From Epithemia pelagica (taxonomy: Eukaryota; Protista; Bacillariophyta): 64,000 nt of DNA. The DNA lies in NCBI GenBank assembly GCA_946965045.2, contig OX337241.1:1054001-1118000 (forward strand). Reading direction: 5' to 3'. Below, piece by piece: positions 36,842 to 45,449 of this stretch; positions within the stretch are counted from its first letter, which is position 1; every line of letters begins with the position of its first letter. The notes beneath the pieces are model-generated. The model saw only the letters and a list, made by a program, of their open reading frames with translations, was not told the origin of the DNA and ran no database searches. Position numbers and translations under genes: made by a program.

Positions 36842-38265
36842 ATGGTCCTGACAATCCTTTCGGCGACATGGACCAGCGCTCGAAGTGCTGTGGCATTGTC
36901 ACACGTTACAACAATCTTGGAATCTGGAATGTGCGTGTCGTTGTTCCTGCTGTGGCTGCCCTGGGCGCACCAGATCGCCTGGTTCTACTACCGCATGGTA
37001 GTGGATTCCTATCTCTTTTCCTTTCGAACCGTGTCCGAGGTTGCGGATCGAGCCTGTCAGGAAGAAACAAGCAATCAGCCCGTCATTCGATTCCCCTATG
37101 GACAACGAACCATTGTGTTTTCAAACAAGGACGACGTCGCCTACATTCTTTCCAATCCCAAGGTGAACAAAAACTACCGAACCCGATTTGCCACAAACTT
37201 TGGACTCAACATGTTGGGAATGTACAAATCTGGCTTGATCTGGAACAATGATTTGGGATCATGGCAAAGCGTCCGCCGGTGCTTTGATCATACCTTGAGT
37301 ACCAGCACTCTCAACAGGCTCCAGAGCTTTGTCCAAGATCAATTTCCAAAGATACTCGAGAAAATGCCTCGCGACGAGAATGGAGGGACCATTGACATGT
37401 TGGATGCGCTTCGATGGATGACCCTCAACATCACTCTCGATATGATGCTCGGCTTGCCTGTTGTGGATGAGTGGAACAAGGCTCAAGGAATTCTTGAAGC
37501 TATCGTTGCCTTTTTCAAAGCCTGGGAGTTCTTTTTGGTTCGTCCATATATTGTGTCCGTGCTCCGACCCGGCTACCAAAAGCATGCCATGGCAAGGTAG
37601 GTTCCTTATAGACCACGATCATGAGGTCAGCAGACAAACTGACTCACAACTATTTGTTGATTGACCTGTCGTCGGGTTTTCATTCTTGTACAGTCGCCGA
37701 TTGCATGAGATTAGTGAAGGCTTGTTGTCGGATTACGATAGACAACGCGAGCAACATCCCGAGAAAAAGTCGCCCTTGTTGGACAAGGCCATGGAAAATA
37801 CAGAACTTGCTCGAAGCGATCTCGTGCAATTGGTACTGGAATCCTTGTTGGCTGGAGTGGACACTTCCTCGGTATCGCTGTTTTACACGTTGAGTTTTTT
37901 GTCGCAAACCGAGAATCGAGATATGCTTCGACAGGCGGTGGAGGAGGTTGACACCTTTGTACACCATGGCGACAAGATTAAAGCCATGTCCTTGCCGTTC
38001 ATCCGAGCATGTATCAAGGAAGCCATGAGACTCAAACCTGTCGGACCCATTATAATGCGCAAGGCAGCCCAACAGGACAACGTAGGCACCACTATCATCC
38101 AGCCCGGCGATTCGATTATTCTGAACCTGGCCCAAATGAATCTCAAGGGTGTGGAAACCTCCTACTCGCCAAGTCGGTTCTTGAATGAGGAGGGCCAGCA
38201 TACACCCGACGCCCAGTTACCCTTTGGATACTTTCCATTTGGCGATGGTCCCAAAGGATGTGTCG
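36842..38265 (+). pseudogene. Cytochrome P450 resembling the CYP19 (aromatase) clan, truncated just after the heme Cys; intron 37597-37693
   Basis: I-helix LESLLAGVDTSSVSLF, ExxR (EAMR), and heme motif FGDGPKGC (Cys codon 38259-38261) followed by unrelated sequence. The GT..AG intron restores the frame. Confidence 0.85.
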
Positions 38266-38272
38266 TAGTTCT

Positions 38273-38477
38273 ACATCTGCTCCGCGGAGTGATCCGAGGA
38301 GTGGGGCACGACGAGGGGCGCCTAACTCCGAGAAGGGCAATAGGTCCGAGGAGTGTACTGCCCAACAAATCCGCTGTAAGCGGATTTGGGGCAGTACACG
38401 ACGAGGACCTATTGCCCGCCGAGGAGTTAGGCCCCCGAGAAGTGCCCCCGACGAGAATCACGACAAGGAGCAGATGT
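38273..38477 (+). other. ~205-nt hairpin with periodic tandem G.A mismatches
   Basis: Nested arms CATCTGCTCC/GGAGCAGATG, GTGAT/ATCAC, GGGGCAC/GTGCCCC, CCTAACTC/GAGTTAGG, GGGCAATAGGTC/GACCTATTGCCC, GTGTACTGCCC/GGGCAGTACAC and CAAATCCGCT/AGCGGATTTG around a GTA loop. Confidence 0.95.
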
Positions 38478-38551
38478 CGTGCGCTTCCGTTGCGTCCGAG
38501 GGGGGATGTATGTGTCACACAGAATTAAAATTTGTTAGGCTTTTCCTCCGT

Positions 38552-38681
38552 TGATTTTTCAAAGTCGTTGCTCTACTTAGTCTATGTAGTCACTTATTGG
38601 GGGAAATTACTTACAATGATTTTTCAAAGTCGTTGCTCTACTTAGTCTATGTAGTCACTTATTGGGGGAAATTACTTACAA
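38552..38681. repeat. Two perfect tandem copies of a 65-bp unit
   Basis: TGATTTTTCAAAGTC...ATTACTTACAA at 38552-38616 and 38617-38681. Confidence 0.95.
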
Positions 38682-38864
38682 CACTTAGGATCTCACTATT
38701 TAGGAACAGAAGATCACATAGCGTCTCACTATTTAGGGGCAAACGAAATACTTAGGTGCTACATAGGGCTGTCTTTGAAAATGTGAGAGGCATCGTTGTA
38801 GGCGTTGTTGTTGTCGTTGTCGTCGTCGTCATTTCCTCATCCATTTGATTCTTGAGTTGCCACC

Positions 38865-41719
38865 ATGACGAATCGTCCCGTGGTCAGCCCCATGCCCCGC
38901 TCCGCATCCCATCGCGGCACTGCCGCTTCTCCGATCTCGCTTGCGTCGTCCTCGTCCTCGTTGTCGTTGTCGTTGCCTTCCGATTCGTCGTCGGATGGCA
39001 TCTCCTTGATCTTCGAAGCGTATGACCCAACGGTCGACGAATGGGATGGCACCTTCGTACCAAGGATCGACGAATGCACAGGAGAGACCGATCTCCATAG
39101 CCTGCATTCCGATCCTTGGTACCTTGAGCGGCGCGACAGAATGTAAGTTGATTGTTGTTTCGTCCTTTTCGTCGTCGCCATGGTCAAAAGTCTTCCTTTC
39201 TTCCTTTTCTTCCTTTTTCTTCCTGCGCGCCTGCCCTTCCAATGCTCATTCAAATCGTCCTCGCCCTCTCTCTCTCCTCTCACTTTTCTTCCCTTTGCCA
39301 TTTCGACGACAGGAAGTTCTTGACCATGGCGACGACTCCTCCCGCCACCCGCCGCTCGAAGCGGCAAGCTGCAGCCGCAAGCAAACCGCCGAATGAAACT
39401 TCATCCTCCCCCGCCCGCAAAGTAGCCCGCCGAACAACCACCAACAAGAAGAAACAGAACCAGAACAGGAAGAAGGCTCCTCCTTGTCCTCCTCCTTCGC
39501 AATTGAACAAGGAGAACGATCCTCCTCGTTCTCTTCGCTCCTCTGCACGACAAGAAAGGTACGTTTGTTGCATTCGCTGCTACCTGTTGATTGTTGTTTC
39601 CACTCTCACTGTCTCTTCTCTCGACAGTACCAACCCTCCAAACGACGACGACGACGACGACGATCTTCCTCCCCGCCTTATTCAACCACGACGACAACCC
39701 AACAGGCAAGTGTTTGTTTCTTCCTTCTTGTTGATTGTTGACTCTTCCTTCTCTCACACCCCGCCTCTCTACAGAAACAATCAAACGAATCCGTTCGACG
39801 ATGATTCGGATGACGAAGATACGGTGTTTGATGAAATGGTGGAAGATCTCGACGCGGACGAAGATTTTGTCCCTTCCGTTTCTGTTCGAAGCCGCCGAAA
39901 TGCCCGTGCACGTGGTGTTCTTGCTCGGCGTGCCCCTCCTCCTCCTCCGTCTCCACTAGATACGAAGACGGTTGCTCGCGCAATGGTGGAACGACGACAC
40001 CTCGAAGAAAACGAGCAAGGCGAGATCGCGATTGCGGAGTATCGAACACTCCCTCTCGACGAAGCTCACGATGAGAACTGGCTCGAGTGGTACGGCGCGT
40101 TCGCAGAAGTGAGTGACGAGGTGTTTGCAGACGAGGTGGGTGATTTCGACGTTCGACTGCTTGCCGGCGTTTCGGAGTCCTACAACAAGGCAAAACAAGA
40201 CTCCGTTCAACGATTCCTAGATATCATTCGCCGCCATCGGCATTACCGCGGACTCGCGAAGCCGATTGTTGACCCCGAGCGTGATGACGGACTGAAAGTC
40301 CCCAAGTTGTTTGTCGCTTTACGCGGGGCCAAGACGGACAGAAAGTTGGGGCTACTCAACTCGTTGCTAGCCATCTTCTGTATGAACCTACGAATGGAAG
40401 GGTATGTGAAGGGGCGTGATCATCCACACGACCCCAAATTTCACTACCAGCCCAACACGACGGCGAAGATCTTGAACCACCTGTTCTCGACCTTCCACGC
40501 GAACGGCATTTGCATCGGACAAACGGACCTCAAGGGCAGAGGTTCGTACCATGCCTACTTAGAAAAGATATGGTCGAAGACGGCGAAAACACGCCCCGAA
40601 TTTGGACGGCTGCCAAAACGTGCAACTGCGATTATGGACGACGAGTACCATATTCGCAAGCTTGCTGATCCTGCTCTTATACCATTCGAGATCTTTCGCG
40701 ATTTGCTCATACTACTCTTTTACTACCTGAGCCGCGATATTAGCTTTCGATGTTTAGAGGTACGTACCGAAACGGTTGATTGTTGGGTTTTCAGACTTGT
40801 TTTCTCACCTCTGCTGATGTTTTTTCTACTTCTATTCAGATACATTTAGCAAAGATGACCGACTTTCGTTTCGTAGCTAGACTAGACAAGTCGTATGGAG
40901 AACACGCGGGAAAGCCAGCGATCATTCCTCTTGATTCTGGTCACCACAAGAACGTCAAGTTGACGTTGGCGAAGCCGACATTTCACCGAACCCACGATTA
41001 TCGTTGCAACATGATTATAGAGAACGAAAAAGACCCATGGAGTACCTACAAGTTGTTTATGCACTACATTAAAGTAGCGCACCCGCCGGGTTGGAAAGGA
41101 TTGGTTTTCTTGTACCAGGCGCCGAAGAAAGTGATCGCGGCCCGAAAATCTGGATCGAAACATCTCGGCTGGACGGATTTGGTGAAGGACCGTGCCCAAG
41201 AGAAGTTTGACCCGGTCACGGGCATGCGTCCTGGCGGCAAACTCGGATCCAACTTTGCCAATTCAAACACAAAAGAATTGGCCGCTCGTTGTAAGTTCCC
41301 CGAGGATGGAAACTTTGCGGGCCGAACGGCCCGTCGAACTGGTATCTCGAAAGTTGCGAATAGCGGCGTGCCACAAGCTTTGGCAGACAATTTTGGCCGC
41401 CACAAAAATTCAATCACCAACTACAAGTACCAAGAAATGTCGAACAAGTCAAATCTGACTGCGTCGACTGCGTGCTGGTACATTCCGTCGGACGACAAAG
41501 ACGAGCAGCCGAAGGAGAAATCACGTAAGTTTGTTGTTTGATTGTTGTTTTGTTGGTAACCAGTCTCTCACTCTTCTTCTCTTTTTTTTAGCTCCAAATC
41601 AATCGTCTGACGCTGCTGGTGCTGGTACCAAGACAACTGGATTGAGTGGTGGCGACAGCTCTCCGTCGTTTTCTCCGTTGGGATTTGATTGGGGCGACGG
41701 TGGCGGTCCTGTGGAGAAT

Positions 41720-41757
<38 letters not shown>

Positions 41758-42535
41758 GAATGACCGACCACCCTACGAGAACAACAACAACGGCAACCAC
41801 GGACGACCACCCTACGAGAACAACAACAACAACAACAACAACGGCCGACCTGCCTACGAGCGCCAAAACAACAACAACAACAATAGCAACGGCCGACCTC
41901 CCTACGAGTGGCAAAACCACAACAATAACAACAACAACCACGGACGACCACCCTACGAGAACAACAACAACAACAACAACAACGGCCGACCTCCCTACGA
42001 CAATAGCCAGTAGCACCACAACAACAATAACAACAACAACCGACCGTCATACTACGACGAACCCTCCCATCACCACAACAACAACAACCATGGATCGTGG
42101 GAGAGTGGCCACCAATGCTACCCCAACCAACACAACAACAACAGCCGTCCGTCGCACTACGACGAACGCTCCTGGCAGCGGTCTCCCCCTCCACCTTCGT
42201 CCTCTCATTACAATGGAAATGGGGCCATGGTCAATTGGAGTCCACGTCCTCCCCCCCCCCCACGCAACAACTACTATCCTCCGCGTGGACGATCTCCTCC
42301 ACCGCCACCTCCTCGCCCGTACACGCCTCCGCCACCACCTCCTCCCTCTTCTCGTCTCATTGGTGAGGCGGTGTACCGCCGCAGAGTGGAGCACTTTCAC
42401 CAATCACCGCCTCCTCCCACGTACAGTTCGTCCTACCATCACCACCGCTCCGAGGCATACTATCCTCGCGGTGATAATCGCCACCATGGTGGCGATTACT
42501 ACAACCAACACCACCATGGTGGACGATACTACTGA
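38865..42535 (+). CDS. Tyrosine recombinase with a long N/H/Y/P-rich tail; predicted exons 38865-39142, 39313-39558, 39628-39705, 39775-40759, 40840-41524, 41592-42535 (in-frame TAG at 42011-42013)
   Basis: After splicing: YLSRDISFRCLE-IHLAKMTDF (catalytic Arg I), AGRTARRTG (Arg II box) and FGRHKNSITNYKY (His, with Tyr at +9). All junctions keep the frame. Intron 39706-39774 has a GCAAGT donor. The first exon could be UTR (alternative ATG at 39326). Confidence 0.75.
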
Positions 42536-45449
42536 ACTAGGTAAGTTTTCTGTGTTTGATTGTTGTCTCGTCTTTTCTTTGTTCTCACTGCTTCCTTTTC
42601 ATTGCAGATTGTTACTTGAGCTCTTCGTGTAGATTGCTTCAATATGTAAGTGTTTTCTTCGCTCTTTTTGATTGTTGCAACCATTCCCATTATCAATGCA
42701 TCTCTAACCATTGTCTTGATTCTCTTTTCTCTCGGTCTGCTCTTTGATTCATTCTGTTTTGTTGTTGGTTATGCTTCTGTGTTTCTGTATTTGGTTGATT
42801 GTTGTTTGTTTCATTTTCGTCGTCTCTGTTTCTATTGTTGGTTCTTGCCTTTCTTGGCTTATTGCGCTGGTTTTTGCCTTTGGTTGATTGCTGCTTTGCT
42901 ATTTGTCTTGGTTGATTGTTGCATCGCTTTTGGATTCTTTGTTTGATGCTTTGCTTGTCTCTCTTGATGCTTCTGCTGTCGCTTTACCTTTGTTTTTCGC
43001 TCTGCTGTTCTGTCATGCTGCTTCTTGATGTTTGTTTCTTCTATTGCCTTGGCCGCCCTTTTTGGTTGATTGATGTTTGCTTTTCCTCGCTGTTGTGCTT
43101 ATTGCCTCGCTTGTTTGATTGTCATGTTTCTTGTTGCCTCTGTTCCTTGGTTCTTTCACTACGGTTTCTCTTGTTGTTTCGGTTGCGTTTCGATCCATTT
43201 TGTGACCCTGGTTTTACGCTCGGAATTTCCCACGACCGCTAAAATACATACGTACACTAAAATTAAAAACCGAGTACAGTACAAAATGGGCTATAGTAAA
43301 TAGGCACGTGCAGGGATCCTACATCCCTCCCGAGGACCAATGGTAGTCAACTACTATGAGCGCCAGAGAACTTGTGACAGGCGAAACGCTTGATTTTAAT
43401 CGGCACTGCCGGTTTGAGTTCGGCGAGTACGTACAATGCCATGAGGAGCATGATAATACCATGGCTCCTCGCACGGTGGGGGCACTTGCATTACGCCCAA
43501 CAGGCAATAGGCAAGGAAGTTATTACTTCCTGAGCCTCGAGAGTGGTCGTGTCATTACTCGGAACCATGCCACCAAATTACCAATGCCGAAAGAAGTGAT
43601 CCAGCGGGTGGCACAATTGGCAGCTTCCCAAGAGATGCAACCTGGTCTTGCTTTCGGAAACCGAGATAACCGAATTCTCATGTTAGATGAGGATAATCCC
43701 CTCCTGGAGGACAATGACAGTGTGTATACGCATGTGGAGGAGGAAGACGATGATCTCCGCTATGATGACGATGTGGTTGATCATGAACTGGAAGACGAGC
43801 CAGATCCGAACGGTCCACCGATGGAATGGGACCAAGATGGTGTTGAAAACCAGGAAAACCAAAAAGTGAATGACCCAGCTGGTGGTTTTGACAACGGTGA
43901 CGGTGAGATGGAACCTGTGGAACAGGGAATCATGGAGGAGCCAATGGAGGTAGAGGCAGGGAATGTGGAGGAATTGATGGAGGGGGAAATGGAACAAGAC
44001 AATAATGACAATAATGACATTGTTGTGGCCGAAGAAGACGTCCAAAACAACAACTATGAAGAAGCGATTGATATGCCGGACAACGAGGAGATGGAGATTG
44101 TCTTCGAGCCTGCAAACGACGATGGAGACACAGAAAATGACAACGAGAACCCGAATGAGGGTGACAATGACAATCAACGATACAACCTGCGCTCGAATCG
44201 TGAGCGCAGTTACGCTCATCGATTTGGTCACACATTCGCATGTGTTGACAGCCTCGAACCGAAATAGCGTTACGATGGATACCTGCTCCGCGGAGTGCTA
44301 TATCTCATTGAGGCAGAGACAAACCTAGCAACCCCACAGATGTCTATGAGGCTAGGGATCAAGATGTTTGGCAACAAAGGAAGAGAAGCCGTTAAAAAGG
44401 AAATAAAACAGCTGCATGACCGAGGGGTTTTACAAGCCGTCCACAAAGCCGACTTATCGTGGGAACAAATTAAGCAAGCACTGAATTACCTGATGTTTTT
44501 AAAACGCAAGAGATGTGGAAAAGTAAAAGGTCGGGGCTGTGCTGACGGGCGTAAACAACGAGGTTTTATCCCGAAGGAAGATGCCGCTTCACCCACCGTT
44601 TCAACAGAAGCAGTTTTCATAACGGCAGTCGTGGGCGCTGGGGAGAGGCTATGTTGTCATAGCAGATATCCCAGGCGCGTTTATGCATTCCGACATGGAT
44701 CCAAATGTCCATATGCGCATCGAGGGATTAATGGCAGAATTGCTCTTGGAAGTCGACTATGAAATGTACAGCAAATATGTGGTATACGAATACAACAAAC
44801 CGGTTATCTATGTGGAAATGTTAAAAGCTTTGTACGGCACCCTCAGGGCTGCTCGTCTCTTCTGGATCAAGCTGAGTGGGGTCCTGCAGAGTTGGGGGTA
44901 CATCATCAACCCCTACGATCACTGCGTAGCAAACAAGATCATTAACGGAAAGCAATGCACCGTAACCTGGCACATTGATGACTTGAAAATCTCACATGAG
45001 GACCCTGCGGTTGTTGAGTCGTTCTTAACCGATCTACAGGCTGAGTTCGGATCTTTGGGAGACATCTCGGTTTCCCGCGGAAAGCGCCATGATTATCTGG
45101 GGATGTTTCTAGATTTCTCCGAGGACGGGATTCTTCAAGTTGACATGCGCCCATACTTACAAACAATTTTTGCTAACATGCCATCCGAGATGGTTGGCAA
45201 AGCCCAAACGCCAGCTGCAAATCACCTGTATCATGTGAACAATGAAGCAACAAAACTCAATGAGCAGCATGCGGAGCGTTTTCACAGTATCACGATGCAG
45301 TTAGCCTACCTAGCACACCGCGGTCGGCCCGATATTCGAACTGCTGTCGCCTTCCTGTCCACCCAAGTGGCACAACCTGATGAAGACGATTATCGGAAGT
45401 TGTCACGAGTGTTGAAATATTTGCAAACCACCGTGGATTTGGTTCTTCG

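Follow-up and report, generated by a model that had tools for sequence, protein, structure and literature searches.

A multi-copy tyrosine-recombinase DNA transposon of the diatom Epithemia pelagica with a conserved, G·A-mismatched terminal hairpin

What kind of mobile element encodes a tyrosine recombinase (YR) as its sole enzyme and starts with a long hairpin is the question raised by a locus in the genome of the diatom Epithemia pelagica. This locus lies in the window, by which we mean the whole stretch of 64,000 nucleotides (nt) that was analysed (C17:1054001-1118000 of a 60.5-Mb, 23-contig assembly); the complete assembly was searched for further copies. At 38262-43347 the window contains a transposon copy of 5,086 bp, which is autonomous and a member of a multi-copy DNA transposon family. 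We consider it probable that this copy represents a diatom YR DNA transposon that works like a Crypton. An earlier reading of the sequence (the original prediction) had proposed a candidate new transposon type. The claim of structural distinctness stands, and the family is better placed inside or beside the Cryptons, as a new group of distinct structure that is set apart by its motifs and by its ends. The ends of the window copy comprise the following features.

38262-38266, + strand: left hybrid core GTCGT, with target-derived G-T-C, the crossover at G38265 and an element-derived T
38264-38491, + strand: left hairpin of ~230 nt (fold -78.7 kcal/mol, z = -11)
38487-38511, + strand: segment immediately following the hairpin base, which pairs with the right terminus (-18 to -23 kcal/mol for the duplex)
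43245-43342, + strand: right terminal segment, common to the 1.6-kb non-autonomous elements, of which the last ~25 nt (~43318-43342) pair with 38487-38511
43343-43347, + strand: right hybrid core GTAGT, with element-derived G-T-A and the rest target-derived

The search of the organism's own genome revealed a long copy on C8 with 87-94% identity to the window copy, three copies on C9 (93-96%) that lie ~42 kb apart with identical flanks and represent a segmental duplication, copies on C16 and C3 (78-79%), and a subfamily on C1, C5, C6 and C8 with 64-66% identity (the 65% subfamily). Close long copies total about 7, and all long copies have the same first and last bases in unrelated flanks. The C16 and C3 copies are 99.2% identical to each other over 4,994 bp at different loci with differing flanks, and transposition must therefore have been recent. 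Four derivatives of 1.6 kb have only the left 244 bp and the right ~103 bp in common with the autonomous copy, and a 385-bp derivative, present in at least 21 copies with a mutual identity of 96-98%, has the hairpin at its start and a related right terminus at its end. As both derivatives keep only the ends, they define the ends required in cis, and the recombinase family mobilises these non-coding elements of 1.6 kb and 385 bp.

At least 38 recombinase genes of the family are present in the genome, in about five lineages. The element of the 47% lineage has a length of 5.36 kb, with copies 98-99.5% identical, and that of the 42% lineage 4.15 kb, with 99.8% identity among copies; both show GTAGT-type cores. 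No cargo genes were found in these elements of 4-5.4 kb. For exons 4 and 5 of the recombinase gene, the ratio of nonsynonymous to synonymous changes (dN/dS) was 0.08-0.10 against the C16 and C3 copies and 0.14 against the 65% subfamily, which shows that the recombinase family is under purifying selection. Identities to exon 5 of the window copy amount to 83-100%, 63-66%, 50%, 44-47% and 37-43% for the distinct lineages, and near-identical copies occur in several of them, pointing to several lineages recently active side by side. The view that the locus is mobile and multi-copy, and not a domesticated gene, is therefore upheld by the shared ends, the non-autonomous derivatives and the near-identical copies elsewhere, and collecting the genomic copies, as the original prediction had recommended, yielded ends that are exact and shared and targets of the form GTNGN.

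In order to define the junctions, 26-27 independent insertions were compared. The left junction follows the pattern GT-N-G-T, where position 3 is A in 14, C in 6, T in 4 and G in 3 cases and position 5 is T in 26 of 27. The right junction follows the pattern G-T-A-G-N, with A at position 3 in 26 of 26 and A (10), T (8) or C (8) at position 5. Two empty-site sequences are available for the window copy. An intact P450 paralogue 35 kb away has GTCGG, compared with GTCGT at the left junction, and intact copia-like copies have GTTGT followed by CAACTAC, compared with GTAGT at the right junction. From the junction patterns and both empty-site sequences we infer a 5-bp element core GTAGT, targets of the form GTNGN and a crossover at about G4. 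The constant asymmetry between left and right is compatible with an overlap region that is very short and equally with the exchange of a single strand. As expected for a Crypton, no terminal inverted repeats (TIRs) or long terminal repeats (LTRs) were found, and hybrid cores of 5 bp are present in the 26-27 insertions and accounted for by the two empty-site sequences. GTAGT had earlier been assigned to both junctions, at 38265-38269 and 43343-43347; the right one was borne out as the core, while the left core lies at 38262-38266, and the GTAGT at 38265-38269 is an overlap peculiar to the sub-lineage of the window copy, 3 bp to the right of the true core.

If the two flanking cores recombined, with crossing over at G4, a circle with GTAGT again at its junction would be excised and the donor site restored, and the circle would integrate at GTNGN sites through the same single crossover. 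The core would stay constant because recombination of hybrid cores would regenerate GTAGT on the circle and exactly re-establish the target. Three copies of the 47% lineage have, directly after the right end of a full element, one GTAGT and a second left end of ~315 bp, in head-to-tail arrangement. This junction is identical to the one predicted for the circle, and it could result from self-targeted insertion or from integration of a multimer. The three places are L054:8820-9154, L055 and L056 (reverse strand).

The recombinase gene was delimited from open reading frames (ORFs) and their frames as follows.

38865-42013, + strand: YR gene with six exons, ending in TAG
38865-39142, + strand: exon 1
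39313-39558, + strand: exon 2
39628-39705, + strand: exon 3
39775-40759, + strand: exon 4, N-terminal and core-binding part with the box I Arg
40840-41524, + strand: exon 5, with K, RxxR, RH and Y
41592-42010, + strand: exon 6, then TAG
39143-39312, 39559-39627, 39706-39774, 40760-40839 and 41525-41591, + strand: introns 1 to 5, predicted from the frames
41700-42535, + strand: Asn/Pro/Tyr/His-rich low-complexity C-terminal tail with NNNNNNGRPPYE-like repeats, recognised by composition

Protein searches were performed with single exons or with natural full-length relatives, and the fold model is that of a homologue, not of the window product. Exon 5 has 83 relatives at E <= 0.001 among 1.84 billion representative proteins. 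The protein's named relatives are from diatoms, namely Amphiprora and Cylindrotheca. In an alignment of 32 relatives, K37, R162, R165, R187-H188 and Y197 are invariant or nearly so, and the box I Arg was located in ...FRCLE of exon 4 by alignment with P0029, which is a diatom transcript, and P0036. Because Pfam gave no match for the exon translations of the window, YR identity was derived from family profiles and structure. Weak Phage_integrase matches were obtained for 9 of the 32 members, and neither DUF3504 nor DUF3435 gave a Pfam match for the recombinase. In a profile search against the PDB, XerA was the sole meaningful match (E 0.21-0.44, suggestive), with RxxR aligned to HxxR and Tyr to Tyr. 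A word-based homology search retrieved with exon 4 only ORF fragments of its own family and with P0029 only P0029 itself. An AlphaFold2 (AF2) model of P0029:250-745, with a mean predicted local distance difference test score (pLDDT) of 83.6, showed the two-domain YR fold consisting of a core-binding and a catalytic domain. Among the matches listed by Foldseek for the PDB (E up to 0.3), all were YRs plus QRICH1, with Cre as the best (E 4.9e-4, probability 1.0), followed by XerH, Flp, Tn1549 Int, XerA, IntI and, as number 11, human QRICH1. The DUF3504 domain of human QRICH1 is Crypton-derived. Also, in an atlas search YR clusters ranked first.

By alignment and model, the protein is a tyrosine recombinase with Arg at the canonical His II position. 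In place of the catalytic R-H-R-Y tetrad, His II is a nearly invariant Arg (R162) in the 32 members, and the other catalytic positions are kept, namely Arg I, Arg II (R165), His/Trp III (H188), Lys (K37) and Tyr (Y197). Although the two-domain fold of the homologue model matches Cre best, identity is only ~10-12%, symmetric 13-bp inverted binding elements like those of Cre and Flp are not evident around the core, and the protein is much larger, with long disordered N- and C-terminal regions. In contrast to Starship captains, no DUF3435 match and no large cargo-carrying element (4-5.4 kb here) was found.

ORF lists and Pfam scans of the window copy, two divergent lineages and long database relatives revealed no reverse transcriptase (RT) and no DDE or HUH transposase, in agreement with the original prediction of one YR gene in an element that has neither an RT nor an HUH gene and lacks TIRs and LTRs. 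All copies down to 65% identity have retained the introns, and as RT and other domains are missing as well, a DNA rather than an RNA intermediate is indicated. The five coding-region introns proposed earlier fit the frames as predicted introns, and intron 4 is backed by contiguity across the exon 4/5 boundary in the full-length relatives P0029 and P0036. Introns 2 and 3 are multiples of three, in frame and without stops, and could be retained in some transcripts. Intron 3 (39706-39774) is predicted to be of the GC-AG type, with the donor GCAAGT. As a trait of the family, the description "intron-rich" had to be given up, since a metagenomic relative (scaffolds L061/L062) has an uninterrupted 935-aa ORF and no introns.

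The left end, the GA-hairpin of which is confirmed by the fold energy and z score listed above, consists of stems alternating with CGAGGAG, CGACGAG or CGAGAAG motifs; opposite motifs form G-C pairs on both sides of tandem G·A/A·G mismatches. When 13 left ends from five sublineages were aligned, they folded into one rod from element base 3 with 74 predicted pairs, and 97.8% of the alignment cells formed a standard pair, compared to 37-49% in slid registers. Both-sided (compensatory) changes were found at 15 pairs, compared to 8.7 ± 1.4 in shuffles (0 of 500 reached 15) and 1-4 in slid registers. The "loop" motifs are invariant and the stems vary. Over 8 lineages, 6-12 motifs were counted on the sense strand and 0-1 on the antisense strand, and in all 8 the fold of the sense strand was more stable, by 2-6 kcal/mol. 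The hairpin is retained in the 1.6-kb and 385-bp derivatives. Hairpins of like kind with different stem sequences occur in the 47% and 42% lineages, and the intronless metagenomic relative, ~31% identical in the catalytic part, has a similar G·A-punctuated hairpin upstream of its gene. In every lineage the hairpin lies at the same end and in the same orientation. As it recurs in lineages that are 31-47% identical in protein, the design is ancient and conserved, and the structured end is a hallmark of the family that is retained in cis.

Both ends pair with neighbouring parts of one internal region. The left terminus pairs with element positions ~204-230 (38465-38491), immediately before the segment that pairs with the right end, which comprises 25-40 nt after the hairpin. 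As the two pairing segments are adjacent, both termini would come to lie next to each other, facing one complementary strand. Element positions 222-256 (variable with lineage) pair with the last ~25 nt at -18 to -23 kcal/mol in the window lineage, the 1.6-kb family and the 65% subfamily, and 0 of 26-113 other stretches of the same element per lineage reach such values. In the 42% lineage, the 41 nt directly after the hairpin are of unrelated sequence and pair at -32.7 kcal/mol; 0 of 89 others do so, the best of them at -13.9 kcal/mol. The joined ends are predicted to form one long palindrome, in which the core lies where pairing is weak.

Cryptons are eukaryotic DNA transposons that have a YR as their sole enzyme (Goodwin et al. 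2003; Kojima and Jurka 2011, PMC3212892). They have direct repeats of 4-6 bp, TATGG in most CryptonS and CTGTAAG in the diatom element CryptonS-1_PTri from Phaeodactylum, which shows the canonical motifs HSxKR...GW...Y (PMC3212892). The family described here resembles them in that the YR is the sole enzyme, TIRs and LTRs are lacking and 5-bp terminal direct repeats are the likely recombination substrates. It also shares with them introns, a low to moderate copy number, non-autonomous derivatives and a stramenopile host, CryptonS being from oomycetes and Phaeodactylum. In contrast, its core is GTAGT, its motifs read RxxR...RH...Y when compared by eye with the published alignment of CryptonS-1_PTri, a DUF3504/DUF3435 Pfam match is lacking, and a ~230-nt hairpin with G·A mismatches and an end-spanning palindrome are present, whereas Cryptons have been reported without terminal structure. 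In the Crypton literature searched, we found no description of a terminal structure in Cryptons or of hairpin-ended YR DNA transposons in diatoms, consistent with the earlier remark that long terminal hairpins are not known to have been described for Cryptons.

After joining of the ends, one long imperfect palindrome would extend from the right end through the core into the left ~230 nt, and its mismatches would be tandem G·A pairs on the sense strand only. This palindrome may act as an attP-like organiser of the recombination site and would most likely be used as an extruded or single-stranded hairpin of the sense strand. In bacteria, some YRs recombine folded single strands, as IntI does with integron attC and XerCD with CTX-phage attP(+). 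The diatom ends resemble attC and attP(+) in having an imperfect, strand-specific hairpin with the crossover site in the stem and in having junctions compatible with a single crossover point. Yet they belong to a eukaryotic host and element, and the hairpin is far longer, with regular tandem G·A mismatches and not extrahelical bases. The strand-specific G·A mismatches together with the single asymmetric crossover point indirectly suggest a use of the folded strand by analogy with attC and attP(+). Similarly, these mismatches and the end-to-end pairing lead us to infer that transposition may proceed via folded single-stranded DNA. More tentatively, the family might be a distinct, undescribed class of eukaryotic YR elements in which the joined-end strand, folded into a G·A-zipped hairpin, is the recombination site and a counterpart of attC and attP(+), and in which the segment complementary to both ends is an RT-less precursor or relative of the DIRS elements' internal complementary region (ICR), linking Cryptons to YR retrotransposons; we regard this wider proposal as possible and still doubtful.

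Several observations weigh against a Crypton-like element with folded joined ends. Pairing of the right end amounts to -14.0 kcal/mol in the 47% lineage, which is not significant, and is weak in the 385-bp family (about -9 kcal/mol). The energy advantage of the sense strand, 2-6 kcal/mol, is small in the nearest-neighbour model. The compensatory changes come from few independent lineages, and a process homogenising an inverted repeat could also maintain them. With Arg in place of the canonical His of HxxR, catalytic competence is putative. In public runs, three sets of short DNA contigs that break at repeat borders, we detected neither a transcript nor a polymorphic empty site, an excision footprint or a circle junction; no RNA run contains the element, and no public read bridges the chimeric flanks of the window copy at either junction. 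Some "joints" in the public runs were considered as splice or excision junctions and rejected, as they lie in low-complexity repeats.

Of the competing explanations, an ordinary Crypton that forms a double-stranded circle only survives best, although we think it rather unlikely. The palindrome would then never be folded, the motifs would be duplex sites of the arm type, bound by the recombinase or by a factor of the host, and duplication would have produced the inverted spacers. The motifs are indeed direct repeats with a spacing of ~16-21 bp that remain invariant while the stems vary, a double-stranded circle is assumed in published Crypton models, and the folded single-stranded step of our preferred reading is putative. 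However, the complementarity survives 15 both-sided changes as well as a complete turnover of the stems between lineages, and arrays of binding sites need neither. Also, nearly all mismatches are G·A/A·G, and in distant lineages a segment next to the hairpin base is complementary to the right end.

In DIRS-1, the ICR is an internal segment complementary to both outer termini and is essential for retrotransposition via single-stranded cDNA (PMC7192593). Like DIRS-1, the present family has a YR, a segment complementary to the left and right termini side by side, and a short species-specific sequence at the circle junction that flanks integrated copies. Adjacent segments of this kind match the definition of the DIRS-1 ICR, and they were found in the 42% lineage as well as in the window lineage and the 65% subfamily; in the 47% lineage the pairing (-14.0 kcal/mol) was not significant. 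A DIRS-like derivative that lost its own RT might thus be envisaged; an RT provided in trans would copy it via RNA and single-stranded cDNA, and the internal segment would be a true ICR. We consider this very improbable. Neither RT/RNase H nor gag was found beside the YR, RT/RNase H being absent from all of five lineages and from the database relatives, and methyltransferase and inverted LTRs are likewise missing. Sense-strand introns are conserved at the same positions across dS > 1, whereas passage through spliced RNA should have removed them. The hairpin starts 3 nt from the end of the element, leaving no room for an internal promoter of a full-length transcript, and, unlike in DIRS-1, the complementary segment adjoins the left end and forms the base of the long hairpin. 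Finally, a domesticated, single-copy host gene derived from a recombinase and lying next to an unrelated repeat or foreign miniature inverted-repeat transposable element (MITE) that supplies the hairpin, as might be suggested by the atypical active site (Arg for His) and the non-matching flanks of the window copy, was rejected with near certainty on grounds of copy number and shared ends, given the at least 38 family genes, the derivatives, the 99% identical copies at different loci and a hairpin at the same end and orientation in every lineage.

The preferred reading, a YR DNA transposon working like a Crypton, leaves some features of the window copy that belong to the gene and its surroundings. 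The C-terminal tail is of low complexity over 310 residues, and the first 139 of these, before the TAG, contain 37% N. The tail had been called prion-like; it is Asn-rich to this extent, and an in-frame TAG lies within it, so that "prion-like" holds for composition only. This TAG (42011-42013) splits the tail, and the frame remains open for 174 more codons, to 42535. In copy C16 the tail is without a stop, and C3 and C9b each have one stop further downstream. The C-terminal tails of relatives are Q/P/M-rich. Two more features lie on either side of the gene.

38552-38681, + strand: perfect tandem duplication of a 65-bp unit (2 x 65 bp) upstream of the gene (Tandem Repeats Finder (TRF) score 260)
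42536-43244, + strand: T-rich 3' region with candidate introns of the untranslated region (UTR) and repeated TTGATTGTTG-type motifs

The perfect 2 x 65-bp repeat at 38552-38681 had been reported before and was confirmed. The unit is duplicated in the window and C9 copies alone; C8, C16 and C3 have it once, and the other copies lack it. The repeat was therefore rejected as a feature of the family and is lineage-specific. The sequence TTGATTGTTG occurs nine times in the element, at window positions 39148, 39587, 39731, 40776, 41538, 42556, 42668, 42795 and 42912, and only once in the remaining 59 kb of the window, where 0.47 would be expected. Every predicted intron has one copy 5-25 nt downstream of its 5' splice site, and further copies lie in the 3' region. 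The motif is kept in C8, C9, C16 and C3 and becomes rarer in distant lineages. It may serve as an intronic signal specific to the element or be the trace of intron duplication.

The copy in the window is bordered by the following sequences.

36842-38265, + strand: left flank, a P450 gene fragment (Pfam p450, E 1.3e-26), cut two codons past the heme-binding Cys
43348-44267, + strand: right flank, an internal fragment of a copia-like repeat with 97% identical copies at at least 5 loci

The P450 paralogue (C17:1126149-1130048), 96.6% identical and located 35 kb downstream, is uninterrupted across the site, and the 3' part of the truncated P450 copy is absent from the assembly. The copia-like copies elsewhere extend leftwards with unrelated sequence. 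At the right flank, an acidic ORF of the copia-like fragment runs on downstream. The flanks are therefore chimeric, P450 on the left and copia-like on the right, and the window copy is not a simple insertion; such a combination points to sequence having been deleted or rearranged between two insertions. Most likely, two insertions in direct orientation underwent homologous or recombinase-mediated exchange, with deletion of what lay between them. Of the reciprocal junctions, neither copia-left joined to element-left nor element-right joined to the P450 3' part was found in the assembly, and a simple exchange between two insertions with both products kept was rejected for this reason.

To our knowledge, no class of eukaryotic DNA transposons is less well understood than the Cryptons; their ends are difficult to delimit, they have no known cis-acting structure, and their mechanism therefore rests on analogy. 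In the family from E. pelagica the ends are exactly defined, the crossover point is mapped within a 5-bp core, recent insertions number in the dozens, the minimal cis sequences can be read from small non-autonomous partners, and a conserved, strand-specific structure is predicted to fold across the joined ends. With these, it becomes directly testable whether such elements move as a double-stranded circle, a cruciform or a single strand. The family also offers a structural bridge to DIRS retroelements and to bacterial folded-strand recombination, and, for diatom genetics, such a compact recombinase, with its 5-bp core and defined accessory structure, may be an interesting tool.

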